From Obrimoposthia wandeli (lineage: Eukaryota): a stretch of 64,000 nt of DNA. Position 1 is the first letter of the stretch. Every line of letters starts with the position of its first letter. This document shows, in pieces, positions 1,125-20,774 of this stretch. A program made the translations under genes and the position numbers. The stretch is taken from NCBI GenBank assembly GCA_977020255.1, contig CDROCS010006408.1, forward strand, positions 1-64,000. The letters run 5' to 3'. Below the pieces are notes generated by a model. The model was not told the origin of the DNA. It ran no database searches and saw only the letters and a program-made list of their open reading frames with translations.

Positions 1125-1139
1125 ATAATGTAAATCCTT

Positions 1140-1505
1140 TTATTTATATATAAATTTAACACTGTAGTTATTTCTAAGTTCTGCTTTGGGCTGAATTGGG
1201 CCACACGTTCCCCGATAGGTAATTGGGTATGATTTCACTCCCCCAATAAGTCGGCTAATCCAGCCTCCTCTGAAAATTATTTTTTTATAAGTGATCAATA
1301 TTTCTTTTGTTCTGATATCTTCCCAATCGAAAATAATAGTCTTGGTAAGTCTAGGGTCCATTTTATGGAGATCCTGCGAATCTTTACGTAAAGCCACTGT
1401 TTTCCCCCTCACTTTCTCAGGATAAAATATCAACAAATTCTCCGGTTTACACATTTCCCTGCTCTGATATTGACCCAGAAACTCATCCGCAAACGTTCCA
1501 AACAT
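1140..1505 (-). CDS. Hypothetical protein between hlyD and the lipase gene; N-terminus probably longer and hydrophobic
   Basis: 121 aa ORF; the upstream in-frame sequence reads YLVPEGRRVRWYFGLFVFF before the annotated Met. Confidence 0.5.
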   Translation of the reverse strand: MFGTFADEFLGQYQSREMCKPENLLIFYPEKVRGKTVALRKDSQDLHKMDPRLTKTIIFDWEDIRTKEILITYKKIIFRGGWISRLIGGVKSYPITYRGTCGPIQPKAELRNNYSVKFIYK

Positions 1506-1691
1506 AAAAAATACAAATAACCCAAAATACCATCGAACTCTTCGCCCTTCAGGAACTAAATATTAAACAATCAAATACGACAATCCGTGAATTATTAACA
1601 TCCATATTCCGATAAACATTAATACTATTAATGCAGACATTTGCTCATTCTGTTATTAATCCATTAAAATCCCGTTGTTGAACATCCATCA

Positions 1692-3194: not shown

Positions 3195-5463
3195 TAGCCC
3201 TCTCCTTGTTCAGATTTTAGTTGCGCGTTTTGTGCCACATTTGTCGCGTTTAATTGCGCGGCGGCTTGTTTGGTAATCGCGACCGGTTTTAAGTTGGGTT
3301 GATGATTTTGGTAACTGTGCAATTTCGCGTAGTAGCCATTTTGCTCTAATAGCTGATCATGGTTTCCCTGTTCTACTATGTCGCCTTTTTCCATCACAAT
3401 AATACGGTCACAATGCCTAACGGCAGTGAGGCGATGAGCAATGATAAACACCGTTCTGCCATGGCTTATCTGTGTCATGTTATCTTGGATTAAGCGTTCG
3501 GATTCATAATCTAAGGCACTGGTCGCCTCATCGAATATTAAAATTCTAGGGTTGTTGATTAACGCTCTAGCGATGGCTAAACGCTGGCGCTGCCCGCCAG
3601 ATAAGTTACTGCCCTGCTCGCCTATCATGGTATCGTAACCTTCTGGCATTTCGACAATAAACTCATGGGCACCGGCCATTTTAGCGGCACTAATCACTGC
3701 CTCTATAGCAATAGCAGGATCAACTAACGCGATATTTTCGCGGATGGTACGGTTAAATAGAAAGTTTTCTTGTAAAACCACGCCTATTTGTCGACGCAAC
3801 CATACGGTATCTACCATAGACAAATCGACGCCATCAATTAATAAACGCCCTGATTCAGGTACATACAAACGTTGTAATAGCTTGGTAATGGTACTTTTAC
3901 CTGAGCCTGATTTACCGACAAGACCTATCACTTCCCCTGCATTAACTTGCAGTGACAAATTGTGTAGTACCACTGGGCTATCTGTTTTGTATCTGAATTT
4001 AATATGGTCAAAAGTAACAGCCCCTTCTAAGTTGGGTAATCTAGAACGGTTAGGGTTGAACCCCGGTTCACGTGGTGTATTAAGAATATCCCCTAAGCGC
4101 TCGATAGAAATACCCGCCTGTTGGAATTCTTGCCAAAGTTGTACCAGCTTTAATACCGGGCCACTGACGCGACCCGCTAACATATTAAAGGCCACTAGTT
4201 GCCCAACGGATAAATCACCCGCTATCACTAAATGCGCACCCATCCAGATAATGCCTAAGGTCATTAACTTATTGATCAAACCTGCTACTTGGTTCGCAAC
4301 ATTGTTTAAGTTTTGGCTTTTAAACGAGGCATGTACATAACTAGATAAATGCTCTTCTAACTTGCGGCTCATTTGTGGCTCAACCGCCATGGTTTTAACC
4401 GTGCTAATACCCGTCATTGATTCGGTTAAAAACGCGGTATTAGCTGCCCCGTGTTTAAATTTTTCGTTTAATCTATGGCGCAATATAGGCGTGATGAATA
4501 AGGAGAGCAGTACATAGGCAGGGATTGTCGCTAGCACTATCCACGTCAGTGTCGGGCTGTAAAACCACATCACCGCGATAAAGACAAATACAAAAAATAG
4601 ATCAATCACTAAAGTGAGTGCTGTACCGGTAATAAAATTGCGAATCGTATCTAGCTCACGTACTCTGGCAACGTTTTGACCTACTTGACGTGCTTCAAAG
4701 TAGGACATCGGCAGTGCCATTAAATGCTTGAATAAACGCGAGCCCAAAGCGACATCAACTCTGTTAGTCGTGTGACTGAATAAATAGTTGCGAAAACCAC
4801 CTAAAAAAGCTTCGAACACTACCACGATGAAAAAGCCGACTGCCAATACATCTAAAGTGGTAAAGCCGCGATGCACTAATACTTTATCCATCACGACTTG
4901 AAAATAGCGGTGTTACTAAAGCGAATAACTGGGATGTTAGTTGAGGCGATAATGACTTTGAAGAACAGCTTACGATATTTTATCAACGAGGGAATAAACC
5001 ACGTTATATCGAATTTTTGCTGCAGACTTTCTGATAGTCCCAAGCGCCTTGTAACTAAAATCAACTCACCCGAGCACATAGCTAAGAATGCATCTTCAGT
5101 CACCGTCTTAGGCGCTGTTTCTCTTAAGTCATGAATTAAAAACTTTAACTTGCTCTTGGTAGCTCGTTTAGATTTTATTGATGCACTCTCTACCGTTTCA
5201 TCGGTATCAGTAGATACACGCGCAACTATAAAATAACTGCCATCTCGATGTTTAGCGATAGCGGGGAAAACACCGTTTTTAAGGGCATTCAATTTAAGAG
5301 GAATACATTTAGCCTTTAAAGTCAGCGCTTTAGCAGCCTGTAATAGTTCTGTATCAGTAAAATCCTGCCCGCCTATTGCAAACTGATGTCTTAATTGTTC
5401 AGGCTCTGCGGGTAATTGATGAAATCTTGCAATAGCAACTAATGTTTGCAAACCTGTATCCAT
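3194..5463 (-). pseudogene. hlyB: HlyB-family T1SS ABC transporter (C39-like domain, TMD, NBD) split by frameshift(s) at ~4900-4940
   Basis: ORF 4891..5463 holds the C39-like N-terminus; ORF 3194..4894 has Walker [17 protein letters not shown] and Walker B ILIFDE. The junction [11 protein letters not shown](F)QVVMDKV can be rebuilt only by changing frame. Confidence 0.88.
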
Positions 5464-5777
5464 ACTAACTTTTCATTCCTTTGCATAAGTCTTAATAGTG
5501 ATAATTCAGGAGGCTGACATAATTAATTCTTAAAATAGCAATGATATAAAGATATTGTGAACATTCATTTCAAGAATCAAAAAATGACAAAATAGTTAAT
5601 GTCTTATTTGCAAGAAGCAAGAAAATCTATTAACAATTAGCACCTTAGCCTCATTAATCCGAACAGTATTTTATTACAATTCAACAATATACAAACCTGC
5701 TACTAGTTATAGGTTTTTCAGGTTTTTTACCCAAAAATCATACAAATCACACTTTTTTGTAAAAAAATGCTTACTAG

Positions 5778-6342
5778 AGAGCTCAGCATAACTCGATCAT
5801 AAATGCCTAAATTTTGATAAAATATGATATGCAAAATTCATTTACGACACAACCCGAGCTTTTCGTGGCGGCTTCAGATTTAGATAACTCTGCAGCTTAT
5901 AGTTCTAAAGAGACGAGAGACACATTAGAAGAACTGGGTATCGAAGATCAAGTTCAGCGAAAAGGTTATCGGAACAACCCGCTGAGTGAGCAGGATAAAC
6001 TTCGTAACGCCGAGATTGCAGTAACAAGAGCAGGTGGAGAACGTCCATTTGCAACGTATAAAACACACTATGGACTAACGCGCACTCGCTTTATGGGGCT
6101 TGCTAAAAATGAGACTTTTTTTGGATTAGCAGCAATGGCAGCAAACATAAGAAAAGGCGCTAGATTTTTAATGCTGTACGGTCTGCCAGAAATGGAAATC
6201 GCAGGATAGATACCTCTAATGTGAGGAATACTGGGAGTTCAAAGGCAGTATGGACGAACAATATCAACATTCTAGCGAGTTTAGACGATATTTTATTGAA
6301 AAACCGACACGAACCGAAAAGGTGGGCCTTATGCAGAGCTTT
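5778..6342 (+). mobile_element. Internally deleted IS5-family element (565 bp)
   Basis: 14 bp imperfect terminal IRs AGAGCTCAGCATAA / TTATGCAGAGCTTT, flanked by TTACTAG direct repeats (5771-5777, 6343-6349). ORF 5829-6209 fuses a short N-terminus to the transposase C-terminus (AYSSKETR..RAGGERPFATYK..RFMGLAKN). Confidence 0.8.
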
Positions 6343-6350
6343 TTACTAGT

Positions 6351-6409
6351 CATTGCTGTCCGGTTAAAAAGTGCAAGTTCTCTAACAAAAATTAAACAGG
6401 CCCCTAAAG
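6351..6409 (+). mobile_element. Degenerate, internally deleted copy of MITE family A
   Basis: Left end CATTGCTGTCCGGTTAAAAAGTG matches the other copies; decayed right end AAAAATTAAACAGGCCCCTAAAG. Confidence 0.6.
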
Positions 6410-6773
6410 ATTAATAGTGATAAATCAGCAATCCAAGATAAGAATTTCCTTTATGCTAGTAGCCAATATCAGCGCTAAAAAATATGCTTTTCAGTTGTTT
6501 CGAAGCCTCTACTATTTCCATGTTGTTGAAATTCCACACGCGCCAAGAACATGGCTACTTCTCTTAATGTTGCTTAAAGCCGTCAGCTATGGGAAATCTC
6601 TTAAAGTGAAAACCGCCTGATTCAATCACATATTTCCACTTCCAACTTAGGTAAATTCTGATCGAACAACCATGCAATGGAATGAATGGTGTATTGATGG
6701 TAAGATATTTACGTCTAGGGAGCGAGATGACTAACAACCGTTGAAAAATTCATGTTATATTAGTGGCTAAAAT

Positions 6774-8000
6774 TTAAAAATTTGAGGCTACACTTAAGCT
6801 ACCCTTGGAGCTTTCATCTATATGTGTAGACCACCAAGCCATATGCTCTGCCCTAGGTTTCAAATATTTTGAACGGTTATAAGCTTTACGAATAGTATTT
6901 TTGTCTACATGAGCAAGCGCAGCCTCAATTACATCTGGATTAAAATCCTGTTCGTTTAATGTGGTACTCGCCAGTGCTCTAAATCCGTGAGCAACTAATC
7001 TATCTTTATAACCAATACGGCGTAATACTTTATTCACCGTTTCTGTATTAATATTCTTTTTAGGATTAGTACGAGAAGGGAATAGATAGTCATTATGGGC
7101 TGATTTTAAAGTTTTTAAAATCTTAAGTAAATTTAGGGTTTCTTTCGTTAGCGGTATGATGTGCTCACGTTTCATTTTCATACGTTCGGCAAGAATAATC
7201 CATAAGCTATTTTCAAAATCAATTTCTGACCACACTGCTTTTGCGGCTTCATTTGATCGAGTCATTGTATGCAGTTGCCATTCAATTAAGGAGCGCGTCA
7301 CCATGTTGAGGTTAGCTTGATTTAATACACGTAATAATTCAGGTAATTCTTCTGGTGTGATAGTAGCCATGTGTTGCGAAATTGGCTTTTCAAACGCGGC
7401 CTTTATACCACTTAAATTATTTGTGGTAATTAATCCTGTATTGACTGCAAAAGTCATTATTTCATTAATTCGCTGAGCGAATCGTCTAACAGTTTCCAGA
7501 TTACCTGACTTCTCAACCTTTTTTAATGTAGCAATAACTAAAGGAGCGGTTAAGTGTGTAATAGGATGCTTCCCTAGAGAAGGAAAAACATGTAGATCCA
7601 ATGATCGCCATATATCTTTAGCGTAATTATTTGAAATGGATGGCTCTTTAATACCGAACCAACTTTGAGCAACTACTTGAAACGTATTGTTATGGATTTC
7701 TTGTTGCTTTAATTTTTCCTGATCTTTCACTACTTTAGGGTCAATGTCTTTAGCAAGAAGTTCGCGCGCGGCTTCTCGCTTTTCTCTTGCATTGGCGAGA
7801 GATACCTCTGGATAGTTAACTAAGCCAATATTTGTACGAACTTTAGTGAATAGCTTTGAATATTTTAAAACCCACGTTTTTGAACCGATCGGCTTTATTC
7901 TTAACTGTAATCCATTGCCATCACTAAGGGTGTATTCTTTGTCTAAAGCCTTGCACTGCTTGACTTGCGTGTTAGTTAAGGGAGCAATTTTTTTAGCCAT
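6774..8000 (-). CDS. P4-type tyrosine recombinase (genomic-island integrase)
   Basis: Arm-binding N-terminus (LSDGNGLQLRIKP.GSKTW), catalytic R (MTRSNE), HGFR, LAH and Y (AYNRSKY); lies next to the tRNA 3' end. Confidence 0.93.
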   Translation of the reverse strand: MAKKIAPLTNTQVKQCKALDKEYTLSDGNGLQLRIKPIGSKTWVLKYSKLFTKVRTNIGLVNYPEVSLANAREKREAARELLAKDIDPKVVKDQEKLKQQEIHNNTFQVVAQSWFGIKEPSISNNYAKDIWRSLDLHVFPSLGKHPITHLTAPLVIATLKKVEKSGNLETVRRFAQRINEIMTFAVNTGLITTNNLSGIKAAFEKPISQHMATITPEELPELLRVLNQANLNMVTRSLIEWQLHTMTRSNEAAKAVWSEIDFENSLWIILAERMKMKREHIIPLTKETLNLLKILKTLKSAHNDYLFPSRTNPKKNINTETVNKVLRRIGYKDRLVAHGFRALASTTLNEQDFNPDVIEAALAHVDKNTIRKAYNRSKYLKPRAEHMAWWSTHIDESSKGSLSVASNF

Positions 8001-8100
8001 GATGTACCACTGGGTTTTTTGAAATATTTAGTGGTGATGTACCACTGGGATTCAAATGGTACATTAAAAAAAGCTGTTGGTACAAAAAATGGTACAAAAA
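8001..8100. promoter_or_regulatory. Probable integrase arm-type binding repeats
   Basis: GATGTACCACTGGG twice (8001-8014, 8036-8049) and TGGTACA repeats (~8057-8096) between the integrase start and the tRNA. Confidence 0.5.
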
Positions 8101-8207
8101 TGTTGGGATGGTGTGAGATGCTATGGGATCAAAAGGGACACTAAACATACTTTACGATTGATTTTAAAGAAGTTTTTAGATGTAAAAGACTAGAATAGGT
8201 AAAAAAA

Positions 8208-8295
8208 TGGCGGTGAGGGAGGGATTCGAACCCTCGATAGGTTACCCTATACACACTTTCCAGGCGTGCTCCTTCGGCCACTCGGACACCTCACC
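8208..8295 (-). tRNA. tRNA-Ser (GGA anticodon), CCA encoded
   Basis: Reverse complement GGTGAGGTGTCCGAGTGGCCGAAGGAGCACGCCTGGAAAGTGTGT...GGGTTCGAATCCCTCCCTCACCGCCA; long variable arm. Confidence 0.96.
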
Positions 8296-8890: not shown

Positions 8891-9679
8891 ATGGACACTA
8901 ATATTTCACCTTACGCATTGCGCCAACTTATTCGCAAAGGCGAGTTTAACAGTCATACCTCGGGCTTTTCACAAGGCTTCGTACAAGGCAATTTAGCGAT
9001 TATGCCAAAAGAATGGGCTAACGAATTCCTACAGTTTTGCCAATTAAATCCAAAACCTTGCCCTATTGTGGGTATGTCGACGAATCCTGGTGATTTCTTA
9101 TTGCCAGATTTAGGTCAAGATGTTGATATTCGTACGGACATTCCTCGCTACCGCATCTACGAAGATGGTGTGATGACCAAAGAAGTTAGCGATGTTAAAG
9201 ATGTTTGGCGTGATGATTTAGTCACTTTCTTGTTAGGCTGCTCATTCTCATTTGAAGAGTCATTACTTGCAGATGGCCTTGAAGTGCGTAATATCACTGA
9301 AAAAGTTAACGTACCTATGTATCGTACCAATCTTGAATGTAAGCCTGCGGGGCGTTTTTCAGGTACTACTGTGGTCAGCATGCGGCCTATGAAGCCTAAA
9401 GATGCAATTCGTGCCATCCAAATTTGTACGCGCTTCCCGTCAGTTCACGGCGCACCGTTACACTTTGGTAGCCCGCAAGATATTGGCATTAGCAATATTG
9501 ACCAACCTGACTTTGGCGATGCTGTTACTATTAAAGAAGGTGAAGTTCCGGTATTTTGGGCTTGTGGTGTTACTCCGCAAGTGGCAATTGAAAACGCTAA
9601 GCCACCTTTTTGTATTACACACAGCCCAGGCTATATGCTAGTAACAGATATACGTAACAGCTCACTCGCTATTTTATAA
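8891..9679 (+). CDS. DUF1445 / YcsI-family putative hydro-lyase (D-glutamate cyclase N-terminal-like)
   Basis: [78 protein letters not shown]. Confidence 0.88.
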
Positions 9680-9695
9680 TTCTCGGAGATTTACA

Positions 9696-10445
9696 ATGAC
9701 ACAACCCGTAAAACTTAAATTAAATTGTGATCTAGGCGAGAGTTTTGGCTCTTGGACAATCGGCATGGACGAAGCTGTCATGCCTTATGTCGATCAAGCA
9801 AACATTGCCTGTGGCTTTCATGCAGGTGATCCGTTAGTGATGCGCAAAACATTAGCACTGGCTAAAGAGCATGATGTTTGCGTAGGTGCACATCCAGGCT
9901 ATCCTGATTTAGTAGGCTTTGGCCGCAGATCACTTAATGCCAGTGATGCTGAAATCCAAAGTTTCGTACAATACCAAATGGCTGCATTAGATGGCATGGC
10001 TGCAATTCAAGGGTTAACAATGCAATATGTTAAGCCCCACGGTGCGCTTTATAACGATATGATGTCAAAAGATCATGTTCGCAGCAGCATCATGCAAGCC
10101 GTCGCGAATTACCACCGACCTGTGGTATTAATGCTACAAGGCACACCTGATGCACTTTTACATCGTGCAGAGGCTGAAAAATTTGGCTTAGATATTTGGT
10201 TCGAAGCGTTCGCTGATAGATGCTACGAAGACGATGGCCGCTTAATGTCGCGCACTAAAGAGGGAGCAGTCCACTCGCGCGAGAAAATGCTAGCTCAGGT
10301 GCAGCAGCTTTGCGCAACGGGTACTGTTATTTCGGCATCAGGCAAGGAAATTCAATTACATGCAAATACCTTATGCGTGCACGGTGACAATATGGCGGGT
10401 GTGAATGCCATTTCTGAAATACGTCAATTGATTTTAGGAAACTAA
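9696..10445 (+). CDS. pxpA: 5-oxoprolinase subunit A (LamB/YcsF family)
   Basis: LNCDLGESFG, ANIACGFHAGDP, GAHPGYPDL.GFGRR, YVKPHGALYN, EAFADR.Y, TLCVHGD. Confidence 0.93.
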   Translation: MTQPVKLKLNCDLGESFGSWTIGMDEAVMPYVDQANIACGFHAGDPLVMRKTLALAKEHDVCVGAHPGYPDLVGFGRRSLNASDAEIQSFVQYQMAALDGMAAIQGLTMQYVKPHGALYNDMMSKDHVRSSIMQAVANYHRPVVLMLQGTPDALLHRAEAEKFGLDIWFEAFADRCYEDDGRLMSRTKEGAVHSREKMLAQVQQLCATGTVISASGKEIQLHANTLCVHGDNMAGVNAISEIRQLILGN

Positions 10446-10449
10446 GCTA

Positions 10450-11127
10450 ATGCATGTTGAAATAGCCGGTGAAAATTCGCTGATCATTTACTTTGCTGAT
10501 GAAACAAGTGCGCAAGTTTCAGCGCAAGTCCAACAGACCATGCTGCAATTAGAAAGCTTATTGCTAGGCCACGTAATTGACATGGTGCCATCTTACGCCT
10601 CGTTATTAGTTATCTATAATCAATTTAGTACTGACCAATATTTTGTGCGTGCATGCATCAAGCAAGCTTTACAAGAAATAGACCAAGGAGAAGAGCAACA
10701 AGGCAAAATTGTTGAACTTCCCGCTTACTACAGCACTGAATCAGGCCCTGATTTACAACAACTTGCCACTAACGCCAAGCTCAGTATCGATCAAGTAATC
10801 GAAATTCACACTTCGATGGAATACCGCGTTTACGCCATCGGCTTTGCACCTGGTTTCGCTTATTTAGGCGAAGTTGATCCACGCATAGCGGCACCGCGTT
10901 TAACCACACCTAGGCTAAAAGTACCTAGAGGCTCTGTCGCCATTGCCGATCGACAAACGGCTGTTTATCCCGCTGTATCCCCTGGTGGCTGGAACTTAAT
11001 TGGCTTATGCCCTACCCGCATGTTCAACCCACTAGCACAGCCTTCAATGCCTGTACAAGTGGGAGATAGAGTCAAATTTATTGCGATTGAACGCGCCCAA
11101 TATTTAGCACTGGGAGGAGAGCTATGA
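10450..11127 (+). CDS. pxpB: 5-oxoprolinase subunit B
   Basis: VPSYASLLV.Y, GPDL, YRVYAIGFAPGFAYLG, GSVAIADRQTAVYP..SPGGWNLIG. Confidence 0.92.
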   Translation: MHVEIAGENSLIIYFADETSAQVSAQVQQTMLQLESLLLGHVIDMVPSYASLLVIYNQFSTDQYFVRACIKQALQEIDQGEEQQGKIVELPAYYSTESGPDLQQLATNAKLSIDQVIEIHTSMEYRVYAIGFAPGFAYLGEVDPRIAAPRLTTPRLKVPRGSVAIADRQTAVYPAVSPGGWNLIGLCPTRMFNPLAQPSMPVQVGDRVKFIAIERAQYLALGGEL

Positions 11128-12062
11128 GCGCCTTTAAAGTTTTACAACCAGGATTACTCACTTTAATTCAAGACGCAGGGCGTTTTGGCCAACACCGTAT
11201 CGGTTTAACTAATGGTGGACCACTAGATGCCCGCGCCTTTAATTGGGCGAATCGCTTATGTCAGAATCCAGTCAATAGCAGCACACTTGAAATCAGCATT
11301 GGTGGGCTAATATTAGAGGCGCAAACTCAAACCTACATCGCGGTAACGGGTGCGCAAATCCCATTAAAAATCAATGGTCTTGAAGTCCACATGTGGCAAA
11401 CCATTAAAATTAGTGAGGGCGATAAAATCGAGTTCGGCTTTGCAACTGCCGGTTCACGAGTATATTTAGCAGTCAGCAATGGTTTTGATGTAGAGCATTC
11501 TTTTACCAGCGCATCAACAGTAACAAGAGAGAGCATTGGCGGCCTATCCGGTACTAAGTTACAGCAAGGTGACATGTTGCTTTGTAGCAGAGTAGATAAC
11601 GCTCCTTTACTCGCACTACCCGCGGCTGAAATCCCTAGCTACTTAGAAGAAATAAAACTAAGAGTAATATTGGGTTACCAGCATCAATCCTTTGACAAAG
11701 TACAACAACAGTTATTTTTTAGCAGCCAATACCAGCTCAGCGATAAAATGGATCGCATGGGCTTTAGACTGCAAGGCCAGCAAGTTAAATCGACCATCAG
11801 CGGCATGTTATCTGAAGGAATCTGCCACGGCGCTATTCAAGTGCCTGCTGATGGACAACCTATTGTATTATTAAACGACAGGCAAACCATTGGCGGTTAT
11901 CCGAAAATTGGCTCAGTCATCGCTTTAGATACAGCCAAACTAGCCCAATTAATGCCCGGCAATAAAGTACATTTTGAGCAAATAACCATAGAAGATGCTC
12001 ACAACATTAATCATTTAGAAAATCTGCGTGACAACAGTATTGAACTAATCGACCTAAGCTGA
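11124..12062 (+). CDS. pxpC: 5-oxoprolinase subunit C (biotin-dependent carboxyltransferase-like)
   Basis: LIQDAGRFG, GPLD..AFNWANRL, DRMGFRL, GAIQVPADGQPIVLLNDRQTIGGYPKIG. Confidence 0.92.
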   Translation: MSAFKVLQPGLLTLIQDAGRFGQHRIGLTNGGPLDARAFNWANRLCQNPVNSSTLEISIGGLILEAQTQTYIAVTGAQIPLKINGLEVHMWQTIKISEGDKIEFGFATAGSRVYLAVSNGFDVEHSFTSASTVTRESIGGLSGTKLQQGDMLLCSRVDNAPLLALPAAEIPSYLEEIKLRVILGYQHQSFDKVQQQLFFSSQYQLSDKMDRMGFRLQGQQVKSTISGMLSEGICHGAIQVPADGQPIVLLNDRQTIGGYPKIGSVIALDTAKLAQLMPGNKVHFEQITIEDAHNINHLENLRDNSIELIDLS

Positions 12063-12081
12063 TGATCAGCGTGGAGATAGC

Positions 12082-12933
12082 ATGACGAACCCTATTTTAG
12101 ATGAAGCAGCCCTTAGTAAAAAAATTGAAGATCTGCTGGTAAAACGTAACCTTCGTGGCATGAAAACTGTGCAAAGCGCTTTGCAAACAGGCTATTACTT
12201 ACGTGCAGCACGCATTCTTAGCAAATGCAAAGGCCACGTATTAATTGGCACTGGTTTCCCTGTAATAGATACGTTTGAAACCGATGGTCCCGTTGGTGCT
12301 ATAGCCCTATATAAGGCATTAGAAACGTTAGGCGCCACACCAATTATTGTGTGCGGCCCACCTGTTTCTCAAGCATTAATGCAAGATTTTAGAGTACATG
12401 AAATTCGTGTTGGCGAGCATCAAGAACGCACTTTAGAAGCATTTAAGGCGCTTTATCATTACAACCCTGATGCTGTATTGTCGATAGAACGTCCGGGGCA
12501 AGCAGCTGACGGTGGCTATTACAATATGCGCGGTGAAAGCATAAGTGAGCGCACAGCTTGCTTTGATACGTTCATTAACAACGCTAAATGCCCAACGATA
12601 GGTATCGGCGATGGCGGCAATGAAATTGGCATGGGGAATATCACCGCAGCTTTGCAAGATTTAGACATTGTTAGCGCCACCACTAAAGTGGATGAATTGT
12701 TGATTGCCGATGTTTCTAACTGGGGTGCTTACGGTATTATGGCTATTTTAAGCGTTTGGAATAATATTGACCTCTTAGATAAAGTAAATCTAGAAGAGAT
12801 TCTTATGTACCTTTCAGGTCACGGCAGTGTCGATGGCGTAACACGCAATAATGAACTGACTGAAGATGGCTTAGATTTCAGTGAGGGTGAATCTGTTATT
12901 TTAGAGCTACGCCAATTAATTGGCATGGCGTAA
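12082..12933 (+). CDS. DUF4392 protein (D-glutamate cyclase C-terminal-like domain)
   Basis: TGFPV..TFETDGPVGA, IERPG.AADG.YYNMRG, TIGIGDGGNEIGMG, VSNWGAYG, DGV. Confidence 0.85.
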   Translation: MTNPILDEAALSKKIEDLLVKRNLRGMKTVQSALQTGYYLRAARILSKCKGHVLIGTGFPVIDTFETDGPVGAIALYKALETLGATPIIVCGPPVSQALMQDFRVHEIRVGEHQERTLEAFKALYHYNPDAVLSIERPGQAADGGYYNMRGESISERTACFDTFINNAKCPTIGIGDGGNEIGMGNITAALQDLDIVSATTKVDELLIADVSNWGAYGIMAILSVWNNIDLLDKVNLEEILMYLSGHGSVDGVTRNNELTEDGLDFSEGESVILELRQLIGMA

Positions 12934-13069
12934 TTTGTAATGATTAGTGCATAACCATCGATAGGTACACTTAGTAATGCCTATCGCTCAGGCGACTTGG
13001 TTTTTTGTTTATAATCAATCTTTCTAATTTTCTTGTGATTACTCATTTCTAGCTGTTGCACCCAACTGC

Positions 13070-13951
13070 TCAAAGCTCTCCCATTATTTCACGCGCTGAA
13101 GCGGCTAATAACTTGGGTAGCTCGCGCTCCTCATCTAATCTCCAACTACAGCAAAATTCCAAGTTTAAAGGCTCTATTTCGCAATCAATTCTATGTAAGC
13201 TACCGCTGTTAATTTGCTGTTCAACTAATGGTAAAGGTAATAGCGCCAAACCTAAGCCTTGCTCTGCCAAATTAATCAAGCTGGCTACTGAACTACAGGT
13301 ATGAATCACTACCTCTACAGCTTCATTTTTAAATAGCTGCTGTAAATAATGCCAAGGAACCGTGTCACGCGGAAAACTAAGAATCGGTTTTTCGGCCAAC
13401 TGCGCAATACTCCATGACTTGCGATGCTCACACAGCGCTGTACTGGCTACCCATACTTGCGGGTAACTACAAAGTAACTCAGAAACCAAAGCACTGTTAA
13501 CGCCTTGCTCTTGCACCATTAAACTTAAATCTATTTGGTGTCGCTGTAATTGCTTGGTTAAAACTGGCGTAACATCACTGGTTAATTCAAAAGATATATG
13601 TGGATGCAATTGTTGCCAGCGCTGTAGCAATGGAGATAACCATAAATGCGCCAGCGTATCGGCAATTCCTATTTTCAAATTGCCTTTCATTAGTTGTTGC
13701 TGCCCTGCTTCTACTTTCATTTTTTGGCTAATCGCTACAATGTTTTCTGCATAAGCCAGCAATGTACTGCCTTTCTCTGTTAAGTGAGTACCACTTTTAC
13801 CACGTCTAAAAAGTAATACACCGAGCTCGCTTTCAAGCGCAGTGATACGCGCAGATAAGGCAGGCTGACTGATATGTAATTGAACAGACGCAGCTCGAAA
13901 ACTACCTAGTCTGGCCACCTTTATGAAAGAAGACAGGTTGCGAATTCGCAT
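13070..13951 (-). CDS. LysR-family transcriptional regulator, divergent from the aminotransferase
   Basis: GSFRAASVQLHISQPALSARITALESELGVLLFRR HTH followed by a substrate-binding domain. Confidence 0.92.
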   Translation of the reverse strand: MRIRNLSSFIKVARLGSFRAASVQLHISQPALSARITALESELGVLLFRRGKSGTHLTEKGSTLLAYAENIVAISQKMKVEAGQQQLMKGNLKIGIADTLAHLWLSPLLQRWQQLHPHISFELTSDVTPVLTKQLQRHQIDLSLMVQEQGVNSALVSELLCSYPQVWVASTALCEHRKSWSIAQLAEKPILSFPRDTVPWHYLQQLFKNEAVEVVIHTCSSVASLINLAEQGLGLALLPLPLVEQQINSGSLHRIDCEIEPLNLEFCCSWRLDEERELPKLLAASAREIMGEL

Positions 13952-14229
13952 ATTTTTACTCCTAAAGACACAAAAACTATTGATTAGAACTGCGGATAAC
14001 TTGTGATAAAAAAATCACCCATATAATTAAATAGTAATTAATATGGAATTATAATCAAAAAACCATAATAAATACTGTCTAAGTCACAAAAGTAGATTTT
14101 TTTTATTTTATTTATGCAATGCTTGCAAACATAACACTTTTGGTCAAACATGTGCGTCCAATTATTTCGGTCGTAGAAAAGAGTTTGACTGTTTGTCCTA
14201 CGACTAAAAATATACAAGAGAGGCAAACA

Positions 14230-15096
14230 ATGAGCACAGCATATCTTAACGGCGAATACCTACCTTTAGCAGAAGCCAGAATATCCCCATTAGATCGCGG
14301 TTTTCTATTTGGCGATGGCATCTACGAGGTTATCCCTTATTACAGTGGCAAATCTGTCGGTTTGATTCCACATATTCAGCGCATGATAGATGGTTTAGGC
14401 GCAATAGAAATCAAATGTGAAAAAAGCCTCAATGAGTGGATAGTATTACTAGATGATTTGATCGCCAAGAATGATGGTGCGAATAGTAACCTTGGTGTTT
14501 ATGTGCATGTTTCTCGCGGTACTGATAGCATTCGTAATCACGCTTACCCAGAAAACGTTGCACCGACCATTTTCTGTTTTACCTTCGCAATTAAAGACCC
14601 TGAGCCAGTTGATAGAAACACTGCCACAACTTACACCGTGACCACCACTCAAGACTTACGCTGGAAACGCTGCCAGATCAAATCTACAGCACTGCTAGGC
14701 AACGTTATGCACTATCAGCAGGGGCACGCTTCTGGCAACCACGAATGCTTGCTATACAACGCTAACAACGAACTAACTGAAGGCAGTTCAGTTAATGCTT
14801 TCATCGTTAAAGACGGTGTTATTGCTACGCCTATCCAAGATAACCAAATCTTACCTGGGATCACGCGTCGCATTATTATCGATAGCATCATTGCAGATGG
14901 CTCTATTAAGTTAGAAGAGCGTACTATCACTATGGATGAAGTACATGACGCCGATGAAGTTTGGATCAGCAGCTCATCTAAAGAAATTGCACCTATTGTG
15001 AAGATAGATGACACCAATGTTGGTGACGGAAAAATTGGCCCTGTTTGGGAAAAAGCTTTTGCTATTTATACCGCGGCGAAATTCACTCATAGCTAA
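14230..15096 (+). CDS. dat: D-amino-acid aminotransferase-like (PLP fold type IV)
   Basis: AYLNGEYLPL.EARISPLDRGFLFGDGIYEV, RW.RC.IKST.LL.NV, EGSS.N.FIV, ILPGITR; ATG at 14230 after AGAGG RBS. Confidence 0.8.
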   Translation: MSTAYLNGEYLPLAEARISPLDRGFLFGDGIYEVIPYYSGKSVGLIPHIQRMIDGLGAIEIKCEKSLNEWIVLLDDLIAKNDGANSNLGVYVHVSRGTDSIRNHAYPENVAPTIFCFTFAIKDPEPVDRNTATTYTVTTTQDLRWKRCQIKSTALLGNVMHYQQGHASGNHECLLYNANNELTEGSSVNAFIVKDGVIATPIQDNQILPGITRRIIIDSIIADGSIKLEERTITMDEVHDADEVWISSSSKEIAPIVKIDDTNVGDGKIGPVWEKAFAIYTAAKFTHS

Positions 15097-15127: not shown

Positions 15128-15151
15128 AGCCTCTCTTAAGAGGCTTTTTTA
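15128..15151 (+). terminator. Probable intrinsic terminator after the aminotransferase
   Basis: AGCCTCT-CTTA-AGAGGCT stem followed by a T run. Confidence 0.6.
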
Positions 15152-15322: not shown

Positions 15323-16555
15323 TTAGTCTGCTTGTCTACGCAGGAATGCTGGGATGTCTAAGAAATCTAGATCTCCAGTACCTGTTTTCTTCATAGGCTG
15401 CTGTACGGGCTCTGGAGCCACCTCAACATGCTCTTGTAAATGCGTACGACCATTGTGACTACGTGTTTTATTTTTAACCGGTAATTCCATTTGATGCTGT
15501 GAATAATTACCCGTTACATTTGCACGTACTGAAGTTGATGCTCCACCGCTAGCAGCTACTTTCACCTGCTCAGTTTCAACTTTTACAGCTGATTCAGACT
15601 GTGCAACTAAACCGGTTGCAACAACAGTAACACGAAGCTCATCTGTCATTTCTGGATCTATTACTGTACCGACAACCACAGTAGCATTCTCAGAAGCGTA
15701 CTCTTCGATGATTTGCCCCACTTCTGTAAACTCACCTAAGCTTAAATCTAAACCGGCTGTAATATTAACTAAGATGCCACTAGCACCTTTCAAATCAACA
15801 TCTTCGAGTAATGGACTTTTAATAGCGGCTTCAGTTGCAACGATAGCTCTATCATCACCTTTAGCACTGCCTGTTCCCATCATCGCCATGCCCATAGAAG
15901 CCATCACAGCACGTACGTCAGCGAAATCGACGTTAATCATACCAGGACGGGTAATTAGATCAGCAATACCGCGCACTGCGTTTGATAACACGTCATTTGC
16001 CGCATTAAACGCATTGATTAATGAGCAGTTCTTACCCATCACTTGCATGAGCTTTTCATTGGGAATGATTATTAAAGAATCGACATGATCTTTTAATTCG
16101 TTAATGCCTTCTTCGGCGATGCGCATGCGCTTACGCCCTTCAAAAGGGAAAGGCTTAGTAACGACAGCAACCGTTAAAATTCCTAAATCTTTTGCCACTT
16201 CAGCAACGATAGGTGCAGCACCTGTACCTGTACCACCGCCCATACCTGCTGTGATGAAGACCATGTCCGCACCTTCAATCATCTCGGCTATCTGAATACG
16301 ATCTTCTTGTGCAGCTTGACGACCTACTTCAGGATTGGCTCCAGCGCCTAAACCTTTAGTTAGCTCACCTCCTATTTGAATAACAGATCCAGTAGACATG
16401 CCATGTAGAGCTTGAGCATCTGTGTTAGCACAGATAAACTCAACCCCTTCAATATCAGTCGTTAGCATATGCTGCACAGCATTTCCGCCACCGCCGCCTA
16501 CACCTAAAACTTTAATTACGGCGTTATCTGGTAGACTATCTGCCAGTTCAAACAT
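15323..16555 (-). CDS. ftsZ: Cell division protein FtsZ
   Basis: [19 protein letters not shown] tubulin signature, [10 protein letters not shown]-terminal [12 protein letters not shown]. Confidence 0.99.
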
Positions 16556-16741
16556 GATCTATCTCCTTTGGGCTATGCCCTTTTTCAATCTCATTTGGTC
16601 AGAGAATGCAAATTTTGCAAATTAAACTAGTCTGTATCTAAAACCCAGTTAATCGATTTGCTCAATAATTGACTTACAACCTGCTCAACCAAATATCTTA
16701 TTGTTCGTTGTGATAATTTGTCGACCTAAAGTGACAAATTA

Positions 16742-18049
16742 CTAAAAATTTCCAGTCAGCCAAGTTTTAAAACGACTCATTACACCTGGCTGATTACTCT
16801 TAGGCCTTACTACTTTGTTTGGCGCTGCTGACATTAATGTGTCAGGTGATATCGGTTTATTTATCTCAACAGTCGGTCTTGTTGGTGATGCACTACTGCC
16901 TTGCGGCTGATCATCACGGGCATAATGCAAAAGCCCTATACTCGTTGAGAAAATGGGATTTTGTAATATATCACCCATTCCATTAACACCTTTTGGCATC
17001 GCTAATCGCACTGGCATATGAAATATTTCTTCTGCTAGCTCAACCGCACCTTCCATTTTGGAAGTACCACCGGTTAAAACAACCCCAGCTGCCACTAAAT
17101 TATCGTACCCACTGCGACGTAATTCATCTTGCACTAACGTAAACAACTCATCGTATCTTGGTTCAACCACTTCCGCTAATGCCTGTCTATTTAAATCTCT
17201 AGGAGGGCGATCACCCACACTAGGTACTTTTATAGTTTCATCAGCACTTGCCAATTGCGCAAGACAGCAAGCATATTTCACTTTTAATTGATCAGCATGA
17301 AAACTCGGCGTTCTCAATGCCATTGCTATGTCGTTGGTCACTTGATCTCCAGCCACTGGAATCACACCCGTGTGACGAATAGACCCCTGTGTGAAAATGG
17401 CAATGTCAGTGGTTCCCCCACCAATATCGACCATACAAACACCAAGATCTTTTTCGTCTGCTGTTAATACAGCATATGACGATGCTAACTGCTCTAAAAC
17501 AACACCATCAACTTCTAAACCACATCGACGTACACATTTCTCGATATTCTGAATAGCATTAGCAGCGCCGGTGACTAAATGCACTTTAGCCTCTAGCCTA
17601 ACGCCAGACATACCTAACGGCTCTTTTATACCTTCTTGATGATCAATCAAATATTCTTGAGGCAAAATGTGAATAATGCGTCTATCTGCTGGTATCGCCA
17701 CTGCACTTGCCGCATCGATTACCCGCTCAAGATCAAAATCGGTTACTTCGCCTTCTCGTACCGCAACAATACCGTGGGAATTCTGACTGCTAATGTGGCT
17801 GCCTGCGATCCCAACAGTGACTGAATGTATCTTACATCCAGCCATTAATTCTGCTTCTTCTACTGCGCGTTGTATTGAGCTAACTGTCGACTCAATATTT
17901 ACAACAACGCCTTTCTTTAATCCCTTTGAAGGATGTGAGCCGACACCAATAACTTCAATTTGCCCGTCGATTGAAATTTCTCCAACCAAACAAACTACCT
18001 TTGAAGTTCCGATGTCTAACGCAACGATCATATTATGCTCAATATCCAT
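16742..18049 (-). CDS. ftsA: Cell division protein FtsA
   Basis: ALDIGTSKVV, LKKGVVVNIE, DIGGGTTDIA, VLTGGTS, C-terminal amphipathic RFKTWLTGNF. Confidence 0.98.
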   Translation of the reverse strand: MDIEHNMIVALDIGTSKVVCLVGEISIDGQIEVIGVGSHPSKGLKKGVVVNIESTVSSIQRAVEEAELMAGCKIHSVTVGIAGSHISSQNSHGIVAVREGEVTDFDLERVIDAASAVAIPADRRIIHILPQEYLIDHQEGIKEPLGMSGVRLEAKVHLVTGAANAIQNIEKCVRRCGLEVDGVVLEQLASSYAVLTADEKDLGVCMVDIGGGTTDIAIFTQGSIRHTGVIPVAGDQVTNDIAMALRTPSFHADQLKVKYACCLAQLASADETIKVPSVGDRPPRDLNRQALAEVVEPRYDELFTLVQDELRRSGYDNLVAAGVVLTGGTSKMEGAVELAEEIFHMPVRLAMPKGVNGMGDILQNPIFSTSIGLLHYARDDQPQGSSASPTRPTVEINKPISPDTLMSAAPNKVVRPKSNQPGVMSRFKTWLTGNF

Positions 18050-18327
18050 TCACTAAACCGCTTGGTATAAAAAAATAAAAACTTTCAATATATATTTTAG
18101 GATTATACGCCAGACTTTAATATAAATCAGTAAATCATCGAAAATAATATTAATACGTAATGTACAAAAAATCATCAAGGTATACCAGTTCTTTTGTCAT
18201 TTAATTAATATTAAGCATTTCTATCGAAGCCTTATATATTAAGGAGTCTAGCTTGGTCTCTAAAAACTCCAGCATTTTATTTCTATTATATTGGCTAATT
18301 AAAACATTAGTTAAAAATAACCAAAAT

Positions 18328-18442
18328 AATCAATAGCGAATGTTGATTTATAATATAAAATCAAATTTTGATATTGATTTTATATGCACAATCAAAACTT
18401 ACTTTTGACGATTTAATGAAAAATCAAACGCCAATATTGATT
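18328..18442. repeat. Four phased AATCAA-N9-TTGA(TT/CG) palindromic units, period 31/31/32 bp
   Basis: AATCAA at 18328, 18359, 18390, 18422; TTGA at 18343, 18374, 18405, 18437. Confidence 0.7.
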
Positions 18443-18521
18443 ATATTTTATTCATAAAACTATTAAAATTGGATTAATTTCATTCATAAAAAAGCGTATT
18501 TTTTTAAAAAAACTACAAACA

Positions 18522-18566
18522 CACACTATGTAGTGTATTTATATATAAATAACACTACATATAGAA
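18522..18566. promoter_or_regulatory. Paired operator-like palindrome (tandem NrdR-box-like, or RccR/HexR-like)
   Basis: CACACTATGTAGTG (18522-35) and CACTACATATAGAA (18553-66) start 31 bp apart; together they form ATGTAGTG-N17-CACTACAT. Confidence 0.5.
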
Positions 18567-19073
18567 ACCAATAATTTTTTAGCTTATAAAATTTGAAAAT
18601 TCAGAAATTTATAGTTAAAAAGGTATCTTTAAACAGTTTTTTAACAGTATTTCAAACATGCACTTGTAGTGCATTAGTGACAAAACATACTTTTGAGACG
18701 GCTAACTATTTTTGTAAGCTCAGCCTGAGTACAATCTAATAAATTTCTTCATGTGCGTTTTTTGAACGCATAGAGAATCTTATGCCAGCAATAATTATCT
18801 GCATAATTCGAAAAAAAATATTAACACTGTAATTTTTTTGCTTATAAATAGGCACCAAAGCCTCATGACATTGTTTACGCCCAATAATGTAACGTTGAAT
18901 AATCTACGCTAGCATTATCCATAATCCATATTAAATGATTATTTACACCAGCGAGATTAAATTAGAGGTTAGCTTACTACGCTGTTTCACTCATTTTTGC
19001 TTTGACTTGATTGGCATTAACTATCATTGGTAAATTGTTTGCATAAACCTAGCAATAGATGCTCAGCTTCGTC

Positions 19074-19115
19074 TAATGGGTAATGGGTAATGGGTAATGG
19101 GTAATGGGTAATGGG
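19074..19115 (+). repeat. (TAATGGG)6 heptamer tandem repeat
   Basis: Six exact copies followed by TAGG. Confidence 0.95.
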
Positions 19116-19283
19116 TAGGATAGGTCAAAGTATAAACACCCGCTACAGTGCTTTATATCCCTAACACAAATGGAATCGATACTGGGCTGGCTAATATCTA
19201 AGCCGAGCCAGCTTAATGAACACAACCCACTGCAAACACGTTTAATTGCTTACAGTTTACAACTCTATTAGTTACGCAAAGAT

Positions 19284-20774
19284 TTATTTATCTATTGAAG
19301 GTTTCTCTAAATTCATCACAGTTTCGGCACCTTGGGTTAGCTCAGAGGATAGCTTCTTTTTACCACTTACACCTAATTTAGTTAAATTATTAGCTTGGTT
19401 AACCAAGTTGCCCTTACCTGTTGATAAGCGCTTATAACTGTCATCGTAAGCATTTTGTGCTCTATCAAGATGTTTACCTAGATCATCCATCGACTCGACA
19501 AAGCTCACAAATTTATCGTACAACTCAGCGCCGCGATTAGCGATCGCTTTGGCATTTTGATTTTGCTGCTCAAAGCGCCATATGTTTTGCACTGTTCTTA
19601 AAGTGACTAATAAAGTAGTAGGGCTAACTAAAATAATATTGCGCTGAAAAGCGTAGCGAAACAAGCTTTGATCGTGTTCAAGCGCCAGCATAAAAGCGCC
19701 TTCAACTGGCACGAATAACAGTACGAAATCTAAAGTGCGAATATTATCTAATTTCTCATAAGACTTTTGACTTAAGCCACGAATATGATTGCGAATAGAT
19801 TGCACATGCTCGATTAAATGCTGTTCTCGCCCTGTACTATCATTACCACTACAATATCTTTCATAACCTGTAAGGGAAACTTTAGCATCAATGATCATAT
19901 CTTTTTCATCGGGCAGCCTAACAATAACATCTGGCTGATATCGCTTACCTTCTTGAGTCAAAGATACCTGGGTTTCATATTCATGGCCTTTGCGCAAACC
20001 AGACTCTTCAAGCACTCGTTCAAGAATAACCTCTCCCCAATTACCTTGAACTTTACTATCGCCTTTTAAAGCTTGCGTCAAATTCATGGCCTCTTGGCTC
20101 ATTTGCTGGTTCAGCTGCTTTAAATGATCAATTTGCTGATACAAGGCTTGTCTATCACGCGTTTCTTTATCATAAACATCTTCAACTTTTCGCTTAAAGT
20201 CACCAAGCTGCTCACGCAAAGGATTTAATATATGCGCAATAGACTCTCGGCTATCCTTACTAAAATTGGCTGTTTTATCTTCAAAAATCTGGTTAGCTAA
20301 ATGCTGAAAATCTTGCTTTAGCTGATCACGCGCTTGATTAAAGAGCTGAGATTTTTCTTCACTCACTTTGCGCTCACTAGAAAGGCGTACCTGCAGTTCA
20401 GTAATTTGGTTATTGGCACCTGCCAGGCGCTGTTGATACTCCACCAATTCTAGTTTTATTTTTTGCTTTTCTATTTCAGAGACTTCAAACACCGCAACTT
20501 TTTCATTTAGCTGCGCATTGCTAACTTGCTCTTGATGTAAAAGCTGTTCAACAGATATATTTTTGAGCTGCTGTTTTTGATTTTGTTGGCGCTGAATCTC
20601 CAGCTGATAGTTGATGTTCTTTTCTCTATCTTGTTGCAACTGCAGCTTGAAGTTTAACTGTTGGCGTTGCTTAGCATTTGAATACAATGACCATAACAAT
20701 AACAGTAGGCTCAGCAAAAAAGCCGCAAGTGCACCTAATACAGCACTTTGTATATCAATTTGATTGAGCAACAT
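19284..20774 (-). CDS. rmuC: DNA recombination protein RmuC
   Basis: N-terminal TM and coiled coil, QGNWGEVILERVLE.SGL, PDVIVRLP..K.MIIDAKVSL, DFVLLFVPVEGAF, LVSPTTLLVTLRTV. Confidence 0.93.
   Translation of the reverse strand: MLLNQIDIQSAVLGALAAFLLSLLLLLWSLYSNAKQRQQLNFKLQLQQDREKNINYQLEIQRQQNQKQQLKNISVEQLLHQEQVSNAQLNEKVAVFEVSEIEKQKIKLELVEYQQRLAGANNQITELQVRLSSERKVSEEKSQLFNQARDQLKQDFQHLANQIFEDKTANFSKDSRESIAHILNPLREQLGDFKRKVEDVYDKETRDRQALYQQIDHLKQLNQQMSQEAMNLTQALKGDSKVQGNWGEVILERVLEESGLRKGHEYETQVSLTQEGKRYQPDVIVRLPDEKDMIIDAKVSLTGYERYCSGNDSTGREQHLIEHVQSIRNHIRGLSQKSYEKLDNIRTLDFVLLFVPVEGAFMLALEHDQSLFRYAFQRNIILVSPTTLLVTLRTVQNIWRFEQQNQNAKAIANRGAELYDKFVSFVESMDDLGKHLDRAQNAYDDSYKRLSTGKGNLVNQANNLTKLGVSGKKKLSSELTQGAETVMNLEKPSIDK

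Follow-up and report, generated by a model that had tools for sequence, protein, structure and literature searches.

The closest described relatives of the locus analysed here are the D-glutamate cyclase of mammals and the 5-oxoprolinase operons of bacteria. Mouse DGLUCY carries the DUF1445 and DUF4392 domains in one protein and forms 5-oxo-D-proline from D-glutamate (D-Glu) (PMC5339696), PxpABC is established as the prokaryotic 5-oxoprolinase, and the pxp operon of Bacillus subtilis (pxpA-ycsG-ycsI-pxpB-pxpC) contains a DUF1445 gene, ycsI. These three points had been made in an initial annotation of a DNA stretch of 64,000 nucleotides (positions 1 to 64,000 of the forward strand of contig CDROCS010006408.1, assembly GCA_977020255.1, Obrimoposthia wandeli; hereafter the window), and the literature confirms all of them. 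At positions 8891-15096 of the window the same annotation had recognised both halves of a split cyclase on either side of pxpABC, beside a LysR gene and a D-amino-acid transaminase gene (dat), and had proposed a pathway for the salvage of D-amino acids. Here we compare this locus with its relatives in other genomes. Gene spacing and genome comparison show that the predicted transcription unit DUF1445-pxpA-pxpB-pxpC-DUF4392 forms, together with a dat gene under putative LysR control, one unit that is conserved across marine Gammaproteobacteria.

Gene organization and conservation

The five genes of the operon are all on the plus strand: DUF1445 (UPF0317, 'putative hydro-lyase') at 8891-9679, the genes for 5-oxoprolinase subunits A (pxpA, LamB/YcsF) at 9696-10445, B (pxpB) at 10450-11127 and C (pxpC) at 11124-12062, and DUF4392 at 12082-12933. 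Open reading frame (ORF) calling places gaps of 16, 4, -4 and 19 bases between them, pxpC overlapping pxpB by 4 bases, and the tight operon of the initial annotation is thereby borne out, with no gap longer than 19 bases. By sequence, DUF1445 and DUF4392 are homologues of the N-terminal and C-terminal halves, respectively, of animal D-glutamate cyclase; unlike the single polypeptide of DGLUCY, they are separate genes here, 2.4 kb apart, with pxpABC between them. Further downstream, a LysR-type regulator gene (13070-13951, minus strand) is divergent from the fold-type-IV aminotransferase gene dat, as first described and as ORFs and Pfam agree; only the start of the aminotransferase needed correction. 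Its long ORF covers 14119-15096 on the plus strand, and the first 37 codons match nothing in any homologue. Since homology begins at the ATG at 14230, which is preceded by GAGAGG and aligns with the start of the orthologues, the true start is almost certainly this ATG and not 14119, which gives a predicted Dat of 288 residues (14230-15096).

With one genome scanned per species, 80 loci were recovered in which DUF4392 has 52-91% identity; they belong to Nitrincolaceae/Oceanospirillaceae, Halieaceae, Cellvibrionales, Porticoccus, Colwellia, Rheinheimera, Pseudoalteromonas, Alteromonadaceae and relatives of the Thiotrichales, and almost all of them have the gene order DUF1445-pxpA-pxpB-pxpC-DUF4392. 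When every ORF of 84 such loci was clustered without bias, the most frequent families were DUF4392 (79 loci), PxpB and PxpC (74 each), PxpA and Dat (70 each), DUF1445 (62), the alanine racemase Alr (33; PF01168 and PF00842) and LysR (23), and no conserved transporter was present among the ORF families of these loci. Because the arrangement recurs in dozens of genomes, it is, on this comparison, far beyond chance.

Adjacency was counted only in gammaproteobacterial loci with enough flanking sequence (n = 75). Dat is found directly 3' of DUF4392 and on the same strand in 54 of these, within 7 kb in another 10, and nowhere in the remaining 11; Alr directly follows Dat in 27 of 58, and a complete DUF1445-PxpABC set is located upstream in 50 of 64. 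Many genomes extend the unit to DUF4392-dat-alr, often with overlapping DUF4392 and dat, while the locus in the window has no alr and a lysR gene divergent from dat, as do its closest relatives. The co-occurrence of dat with the operon, a check proposed in the initial annotation, is thus strongly positive and mostly involves the same transcription unit. The expectation that LysR would be conserved as well holds for the closer relatives, 21 of the 75 loci having a LysR orthologue no more than 6 kb downstream of DUF4392, and fails in the wider set.

Several variants depart from the common order. One locus (L081) consists of PxpA-DUF4392-Dat-Alr alone, and Pseudoalteromonas has GH3-DUF1445-PxpA-DUF4392-Dat; the pxp genes that these loci lack occur as single copies at other places in the same genomes. 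A Paraglaciecola metagenome-assembled genome (MAG) carries, after DUF4392 and in place of Dat, a 1005-residue protein with FAD-oxidase, 4Fe-4S and CCG domains (L062, 4223-7240), which we take to be YdiJ-like, of the D-2-hydroxyglutarate dehydrogenase type. Glycoside hydrolase (GH) genes flank the operon in some Alteromonadales (L084 6576-8450, L090 6548-8440, L072 10940-12103), with GH3 upstream in Pseudoalteromonas and GH18 downstream in Lacimicrobium, and may hint at turnover of amino sugars or murein.

Two separable modules

Dat is near DUF4392 in 64 of the 75 loci versus none of 15 DUF1445-Pxp clusters without DUF4392 (p = 2e-10), and Alr is likewise found in none of those 15; this statistic, like the other associations reported below, takes no account of shared ancestry and draws on many MAGs that are incomplete. 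By this count Dat and Alr are restricted to clusters with DUF4392.

The company kept by DUF1445 is a different one. An even sample of 401 Pseudomonadota genomes, searched for DUF4392, DUF1445 and PxpA, contained them in 12, 44 and 116 genomes, respectively. PxpA is present in 37 of the 44 genomes with DUF1445 versus 79 of the 357 (22%) without it (p = 7e-16), and is within 10 kb of DUF1445 in 19 genomes, 4-5 of which also have DUF4392. The usual clusters are LysR-DUF1445-TRAP-PxpABC or PxpA-DUF1445-PxpB-PxpC. Genomes that have DUF1445 and lack PxpA encode a fused 5-oxoprolinase of the OPLAH type (Hydantoinase_A/B) in all five cases checked, at a distance of 3-6 kb in four, and DUF1445 there adjoins LysR, a TRAP or other transporter, and the OPLAH-type enzyme. 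One TRAP binding protein encoded beside DUF1445 matches PDB entry 2PFZ (E = 1e-96); 2PFY and 2PFZ are reportedly the DctP6/DctP7-type proteins of Rucktooa et al. 2007. The Bordetella receptors DctP6 and DctP7 have structures with bound 5-oxoproline, and their genes are near a eukaryotic-type 5-oxoprolinase (PMC13274462).

Judged by its gene neighbourhoods, DUF1445 is broadly associated with the catabolism of 5-oxoproline, be it through PxpABC, through the unrelated OPLAH type or alongside pyroglutamate-type TRAP transporters, and this holds also where the genome has no DUF4392 and no dat lies adjacent. The locus would then combine two separable modules, DUF1445 with 5-oxoproline catabolism and Dat/Alr with DUF4392. 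Both cyclase halves do bracket pxpABC here, as first noted, and this is not a rule, given that DUF1445 occurs elsewhere with two types of 5-oxoprolinase and with transporters. Its pairing with the unrelated OPLAH-type enzyme also led us to reject the idea that DUF1445 is a structural subunit of PxpABC.

The encoded proteins

The DUF1445 protein is covered over its full length by PF07286 (D-Glu_cyclase/DUF1445; E = 7e-67), reaches 415 bits against a cut-off of 324 for the NCBIfam equivalog NF003969 ('putative hydro-lyase'), and matches the structural-genomics PDB entries 3DB9 and 2PIF at E = 1e-85. Two cysteines, Cys117 (LGCSFSFE) and Cys225 (WACGVTPQ), are invariant in 85 of 86 homologues, and in the AlphaFold2 (AF2) model (predicted local distance difference test, pLDDT, 92.8) each is predicted to lie at a strand-to-helix junction, that is, at the N-terminus of a helix. 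The single exception has serine at both positions together. It is a divergent paralogue (L112, 6512-7336) from a genome that lacks PxpA, where it adjoins a flagellar or type-III export gene (Bac_export_1). Above Z 5, a VIA-align fold search against 48,161 chains found its own family (2PIF, Z 32), a ligand-binding domain like that of NrpR (Z 9.8) and nothing else; no related enzyme emerged.

The DUF4392 protein, a candidate Mn-dependent D-Glu cyclase, matches PF14336 (GLUCM-like_C/DUF4392) at E = 8e-71 and the PDB entries 4DWZ/5GKX of TON_0340 at E = 3e-30. The six metal ligands are fully conserved: E66, D68, E136, D177, E181 and D262 align to E59, D61, E115, D157, E161 and D246 of the two-manganese site of TON_0340, for which the only reported activity is that of a very weak phosphatase (kcat/KM 190 per M per s). 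DUF4392 is found in several phyla (ESM Atlas), and outside this type of operon we encountered it, at 31-36% identity, in three settings: with genes for a class-V aminotransferase and an aldehyde dehydrogenase, beside a Mur ligase (L099), and as two copies in a 2603-residue protein, together with an Asp/Glu/hydantoin racemase domain (L103, 5761-13572). The same 2603-residue ORF includes DUF4781, with a DUF1445 gene and a LysR gene just upstream. A DUF4392 protein of Thermovirga has been reported with a racemase annotation (PMC5339696).

The three subunits of PxpABC are encoded together, with the expected LamB/YcsF, CT_C_D and CT_A_B families. PxpA matches PF03746 (LamB_YcsF; E = 8e-90) and the subfamily model NF003816 (339 bits, cut-off 213), PxpB matches PF02682 (CT_C_D; E = 7e-67) and the equivalog TIGR00370 (173 bits, cut-off 146), and PxpC matches PF02626 (CT_A_B; E = 1e-84) and passes the domain model TIGR00724 (262 bits, cut-off 230), with a score below threshold for the equivalog NF045499 (239 bits, cut-off 500). 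The operon copy of pxpA is the sole pxpA in four of five related genomes checked. A D-specific PxpABC, one of two options offered in the initial annotation, is for that reason unlikely.

Dat belongs to PF01063 (Aminotran_4; E = 2e-43), and its best relatives in the PDB are D-amino-acid and D-alanine aminotransferases (E = 2e-50). Aligned with 3DAA, it keeps the counterparts of all of Y31, R98, H100, K145, E177 and L201 of the Bacillus enzyme, among them the carboxylate trap (Y31/R98/H100) and the catalytic lysine (K145). It scores below the NCBIfam cut-offs of NF005209 (246 versus 320) and TIGR01121 (222 versus 277); D-amino-acid transaminase models are still its top NCBIfam matches, well above those for BCAT and PabC. 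The LysR protein has both HTH_1 and LysR_substrate domains and reaches no NCBIfam name at equivalog level. Alr of the related operons is identified by PF01168, PF00842 and a TIGR00492 score over the cut-off, and in two genomes the operon alr is the only strong alanine racemase match.

Scarcity of MurI

Genomes that carry the cluster mostly lack the glutamate racemase MurI, which was found in 14 of 59 carriers (24%) versus 299 of 396 (76%) other sampled Pseudomonadota (p = 2e-14). The same is seen within the order of Amphritea, where 6 of 21 genomes with DUF4392 have MurI versus 94 of 120 others (p = 1.5e-5). The curated MurI model TIGR00067 gave at most 37 bits in five carriers, three of them complete genomes, while 10 of 14 controls were positive; the PF01177 matches of those five carriers are YgeA-like or cysteate racemases. 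Carriers without a dat gene adjacent to the cluster have a dat orthologue elsewhere in the genome. The source assembly, which comprises more than one organism, contains at least 13 MurI genes on contigs other than that of the window.

Because MurI is mostly missing and the operon alr is the sole strong match in two genomes, Dat and Alr look like the carrier's own supply of D-Glu and D-Ala. The same two observations make doubtful the role in recycling peptidoglycan-derived D-amino acids that had been suggested at first.

A proposed D-glutamate node

That the genes act around one metabolite pair, D-Glu and 5-oxoproline, is firmly supported, because DUF4392 is tied to D-Glu by Dat, DUF1445 is tied to 5-oxoproline by 5-oxoprolinases and pyroglutamate transporters, and the animal fusion of both domains turns D-Glu into 5-oxo-D-proline. 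How the enzymes are connected is a more tentative matter. The reading that we favour, plausible if somewhat short of probable, is a D-glutamate node in which Dat and Alr, a DUF4392 cyclase, an inverting step by DUF1445 and the reopening of the ring to L-glutamate (L-Glu) by PxpABC follow one another. Dat would interconvert D-Glu and 2-oxoglutarate using D-Ala/pyruvate, with Alr, where present, linking D-Ala to L-Ala; since MurI is missing, Dat is probably the sole cellular source of D-Glu in most carriers. DUF4392, with its di-metal centre intact, would cyclise D-Glu to 5-oxo-D-proline in an exergonic step, as the fused animal enzyme does. DUF1445 would act as a 5-oxoproline racemase that converts 5-oxo-D-proline to 5-oxo-L-proline, and PxpABC would open the latter to L-Glu at the expense of ATP. 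The net result would be an irreversible conversion of D-Glu to L-Glu, ring closure being exergonic and ring opening ATP-driven, and its role could be overflow or salvage, for D-Glu that Dat has made, that the cell wall has released or that has been imported. General thermodynamics argues that such a route could run against an L-Glu pool a hundred times larger, something beyond a simple reversible racemase.

We infer both which way the pathway would run and that DUF1445 would be a racemase. DUF1445 is the candidate for stereo-inversion because racemisation of the lactam alone joins 5-oxo-D-proline to the L-form substrate of 5-oxoprolinase, and it was chosen for its two invariant cysteines, on the model of cofactor-independent two-thiol racemases, and as the only enzyme left without a role. 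The substrate most likely enters through Dat and not as imported pyroglutamate, because the 84 surveyed loci have no conserved transporter. The series from D-amino acid through D-Glu and 5-oxoproline to L-Glu, as sketched in the initial annotation, thus appears as the most coherent single pathway, with DUF1445 as the candidate for the racemase that it had left unassigned.

Several observations weigh against this reading. The mouse fused enzyme is reported to yield only the D form, 5-oxo-D-proline, as determined with chiral standards of both forms, and to have no glutamate racemase activity, so that a racemase role of DUF1445 is unsupported in animals; the fold of DUF1445 likewise bears no resemblance, among the chains searched, to Asp/Glu, DapF or proline racemases or to any other known racemase. 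Dat and Alr alone could move D-Glu into central metabolism, and the need for the lactam route is a matter of argument because these two enzymes might suffice. D-Glu would also be made by Dat and destroyed by the cyclase within one operon, with the risk of a futile cycle unless their kinetics differ. The two MAGs nearest to the window possess MurI, two contigs of the source assembly (C5702 and C3517) have clusters of TRAP, DUF1445, DUF4392 and PxpABC genes without Dat, and the shared ancestry and MAG incompleteness mentioned above affect the statistics on MurI and gene association.

The chief rival account, unlikely in our judgement if worth serious attention, reverses the D branch. Both enantiomers of 5-oxoproline would be used, PxpABC opening the L form with ATP, while DUF1445 and/or DUF4392 would hydrolyse 5-oxo-D-proline to D-Glu without ATP, pulled by a small and drained D-Glu pool; Dat and pyruvate would take D-Glu to 2-oxoglutarate, or D-Glu would feed murein, and Alr would convert D-Ala to L-Ala. 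Here no racemase is needed and the known activities of the families suffice, a pyruvate/alanine amino shuttle fits the position of Alr directly after Dat, DUF1445 does accompany pyroglutamate TRAP transporters, and salvage of 5-oxo-D-proline to D-Glu would be valuable in MurI-poor carriers. The cyclase equilibrium, however, favours the lactam (a textbook point), the DUF4392-dat operons have no pyroglutamate transporter, one DUF protein is left without a distinct role, and the strict tie of DUF1445 to two unrelated types of ATP-dependent 5-oxoprolinase goes unexplained.

There is a smaller chance that the genes are housekeeping neighbours linked only by co-regulation as glutamate-related functions, PxpABC and DUF1445 performing ordinary repair of 5-oxo-L-proline, Dat and Alr making murein precursors in bacteria that have lost MurI, and DUF4392 having some other small-molecule role, for instance as a weak Mn-dependent phosphatase like TON_0340. 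The operon copies of pxpA and alr are sole copies in several genomes, MurI is missing in most carriers, pxpA or pxpBC is sometimes elsewhere in the genome, and DUF4392 also occurs in unrelated contexts (class-V aminotransferase, aldehyde dehydrogenase), all of which fits such an account, as does the in vitro phosphatase activity of TON_0340, which is however very low. It accommodates poorly the very specific and often overlapping adjacency of DUF4392 and dat across several orders, and the fact that the animal two-domain fusion is a D-Glu cyclase, linking exactly the two metabolite sides brought together here. Very unlikely, finally, is a PxpABC paralogue that acts on a different lactam or on 5-oxo-D-proline, with both DUF proteins processing that substrate. 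A PxpABC paralogue of Pseudomonas putida is needed for butyrolactam and not for 5-oxoproline (bioRxiv 10.1101/2021.12.09.472016), PxpC falls under its NCBIfam equivalog cut-off, and the Paraglaciecola locus has the oxidase, presumably YdiJ-like, instead of Dat; yet PxpA and PxpB exceed their NCBIfam cut-offs, a pxpA that is the sole copy in four of five genomes presumably covers the universal repair of 5-oxo-L-proline, and a D-specific prolinase next to a D-Glu cyclase would form a futile cycle.

A broader version of the D-glutamate node, which we regard as somewhat unlikely in its entirety, holds that many marine Gammaproteobacteria have replaced MurI by Dat/Alr together with an ATP-driven one-way return of D-Glu to L-Glu, DUF4392 being the Mn-dependent D-glutamate cyclase and DUF1445 a new enzyme, a 5-oxoproline racemase. 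If true, it would explain ycsI in Bacillus, DUF1445 in pyroglutamate-uptake loci and both domains of human DGLUCY, and two widespread DUFs would gain activities, one of them half of a human mitochondrial enzyme that has featured in studies of heart failure. Marine dissolved organic nitrogen has D-Glu and D-Ala among its major components, and an ATP-driven route from D-Glu to L-Glu would join MurI and DgcN/DgcA in that nitrogen cycle. The apparent absence of MurI from most carriers implies that common marine lineages, namely Nitrincolaceae/Oceanospirillaceae, Halieaceae, Cellvibrionales and some Alteromonadales, carry out an essential cell-wall step in another way.

Host and surroundings of the locus

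The best DUF4392 matches (91-98% identity) come from MAGs labelled Oceanospirillaceae/Nitrincolaceae and from 'Osedax symbiont Rs1'; the source assembly (1.35 Gb) contains many bacteria, and the host of the contig is, by these matches, an Oceanospirillaceae/Nitrincolaceae bacterium. Another contig of the assembly (C5358), a near-identical relative of the window, has DUF4392-LysR-Dat-ftsZ-ftsA. Among sequencing runs, matches to the locus were confined to assembled contigs, and no RNA run contained it. The clusters on contigs C5702 and C3517 are arranged as TRAP(DctPQM)-DUF1445-DUF4392-PxpABC followed by a tandem universal-stress-protein gene; in C3517, DUF1445 is separated from DUF4392 by genes for a Cache-domain histidine kinase and a response regulator.

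The lysR-dat control region with the dat leader (13952-14229) has conserved blocks in an alignment of five relatives. Close relatives share the DNA sequence of the leader itself (14110-14229), which has an inverted repeat, GTCGTAG...CTACGAC, at about 14170-14205. The leader matches no Rfam family, and its predicted RNA fold (z -0.5 versus shuffles) is not significant; a regulatory RNA was dropped as a candidate, since Rfam and folding were both empty. A terminator-like hairpin 3' of dat (15128-15145, plus strand) comes from a consensus scan alone, and promoter and terminator scans of the locus did no better than on shuffled sequence.

To the left of the operon are a tRNA-Ser(GGA) gene (8208-8295, minus strand) and a P4-type integrase gene (6774-8000), and to the right are ftsZ and ftsA. 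We rejected the operon as part of the neighbouring mobile island, because the island runs leftwards, away from the operon, and relatives keep the operon in synteny with ftsZ. The cargo of the island (1-8295) includes a transposase fragment (5814-6209), an HlyD-type protein (1692-3194) and a C39-peptidase ORF (4891-5463) that directly adjoins an ABC exporter ORF (3194-4894). C39 peptidase and ABC exporter are normally a single protein, and the ORF pair may be a split or frameshifted exporter of the bacteriocin type. On the other side of the operon (15323-20774), no ftsQ precedes ftsZ/ftsA, rmuC is the next gene, and 1.2 kb (18050-19283) are devoid of ORFs of at least 100 amino acids.

Comparison with known systems

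Our search found no literature on the function of bacterial DUF1445 or DUF4392 or on any 5-oxoproline racemase, with incomplete coverage, and no discussion of the DUF1445 gene of Bordetella-type pyroglutamate loci in the literature searched. The operon, its Dat/Alr extension, the split into two modules and the link to missing MurI appear to be undescribed, while the enzyme families themselves are known.

Mammalian DGLUCY (C14orf159 / 9030617O03Rik, EC 4.2.1.48) has the same pair of domains, PF07286 and PF14336, with conserved DUF4392 metal ligands, and D-Glu is the implied substrate here as well, through the tie to Dat. The locus differs in splitting the domains into two proteins with three genes between them, and in adding an ATP-dependent 5-oxoprolinase and a transaminase; whereas animals excrete 5-oxo-D-proline, it co-encodes an enzyme that opens the ring of 5-oxoproline. 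With the PxpABC operons of Escherichia coli (ybgJKL), B. subtilis and Corynebacterium glutamicum (pxpTABC) it shares the three subunits and their order, and with that of B. subtilis also a DUF1445 gene within the cluster; in contrast to these operons, it has no transporter gene, adds DUF4392, Dat and often Alr, and belongs to carriers that are mostly MurI-less. Clusters of the Bordetella type (LysR-DUF1445-TRAP of the DctP6/7 type-5-oxoprolinase) also place DUF1445 and LysR beside an ATP-dependent 5-oxoprolinase, but have a pyroglutamate transporter and lack DUF4392, Dat and Alr.

Two further systems resemble the proposed route in logic or in enzymes. In the DgcN-DgcA pathway attributed to Yu et al. 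2023, D-Glu is reportedly catabolised by N-acetylation, racemisation and deacetylation. The logic is the same, the amino group being masked as an amide, the centre inverted and the product unmasked to L-Glu; the proteins, however, are unrelated, and the amide proposed here is an internal lactam with ATP-driven unmasking. Dat and alanine racemase can supply D-Glu in Bacillus and Staphylococcus in place of MurI, and here too a canonical Dat with alanine racemase could supply D-Glu. The difference is that the present arrangement is found in Gammaproteobacteria, and that it is fixed in an operon with both cyclase halves and a 5-oxoprolinase.

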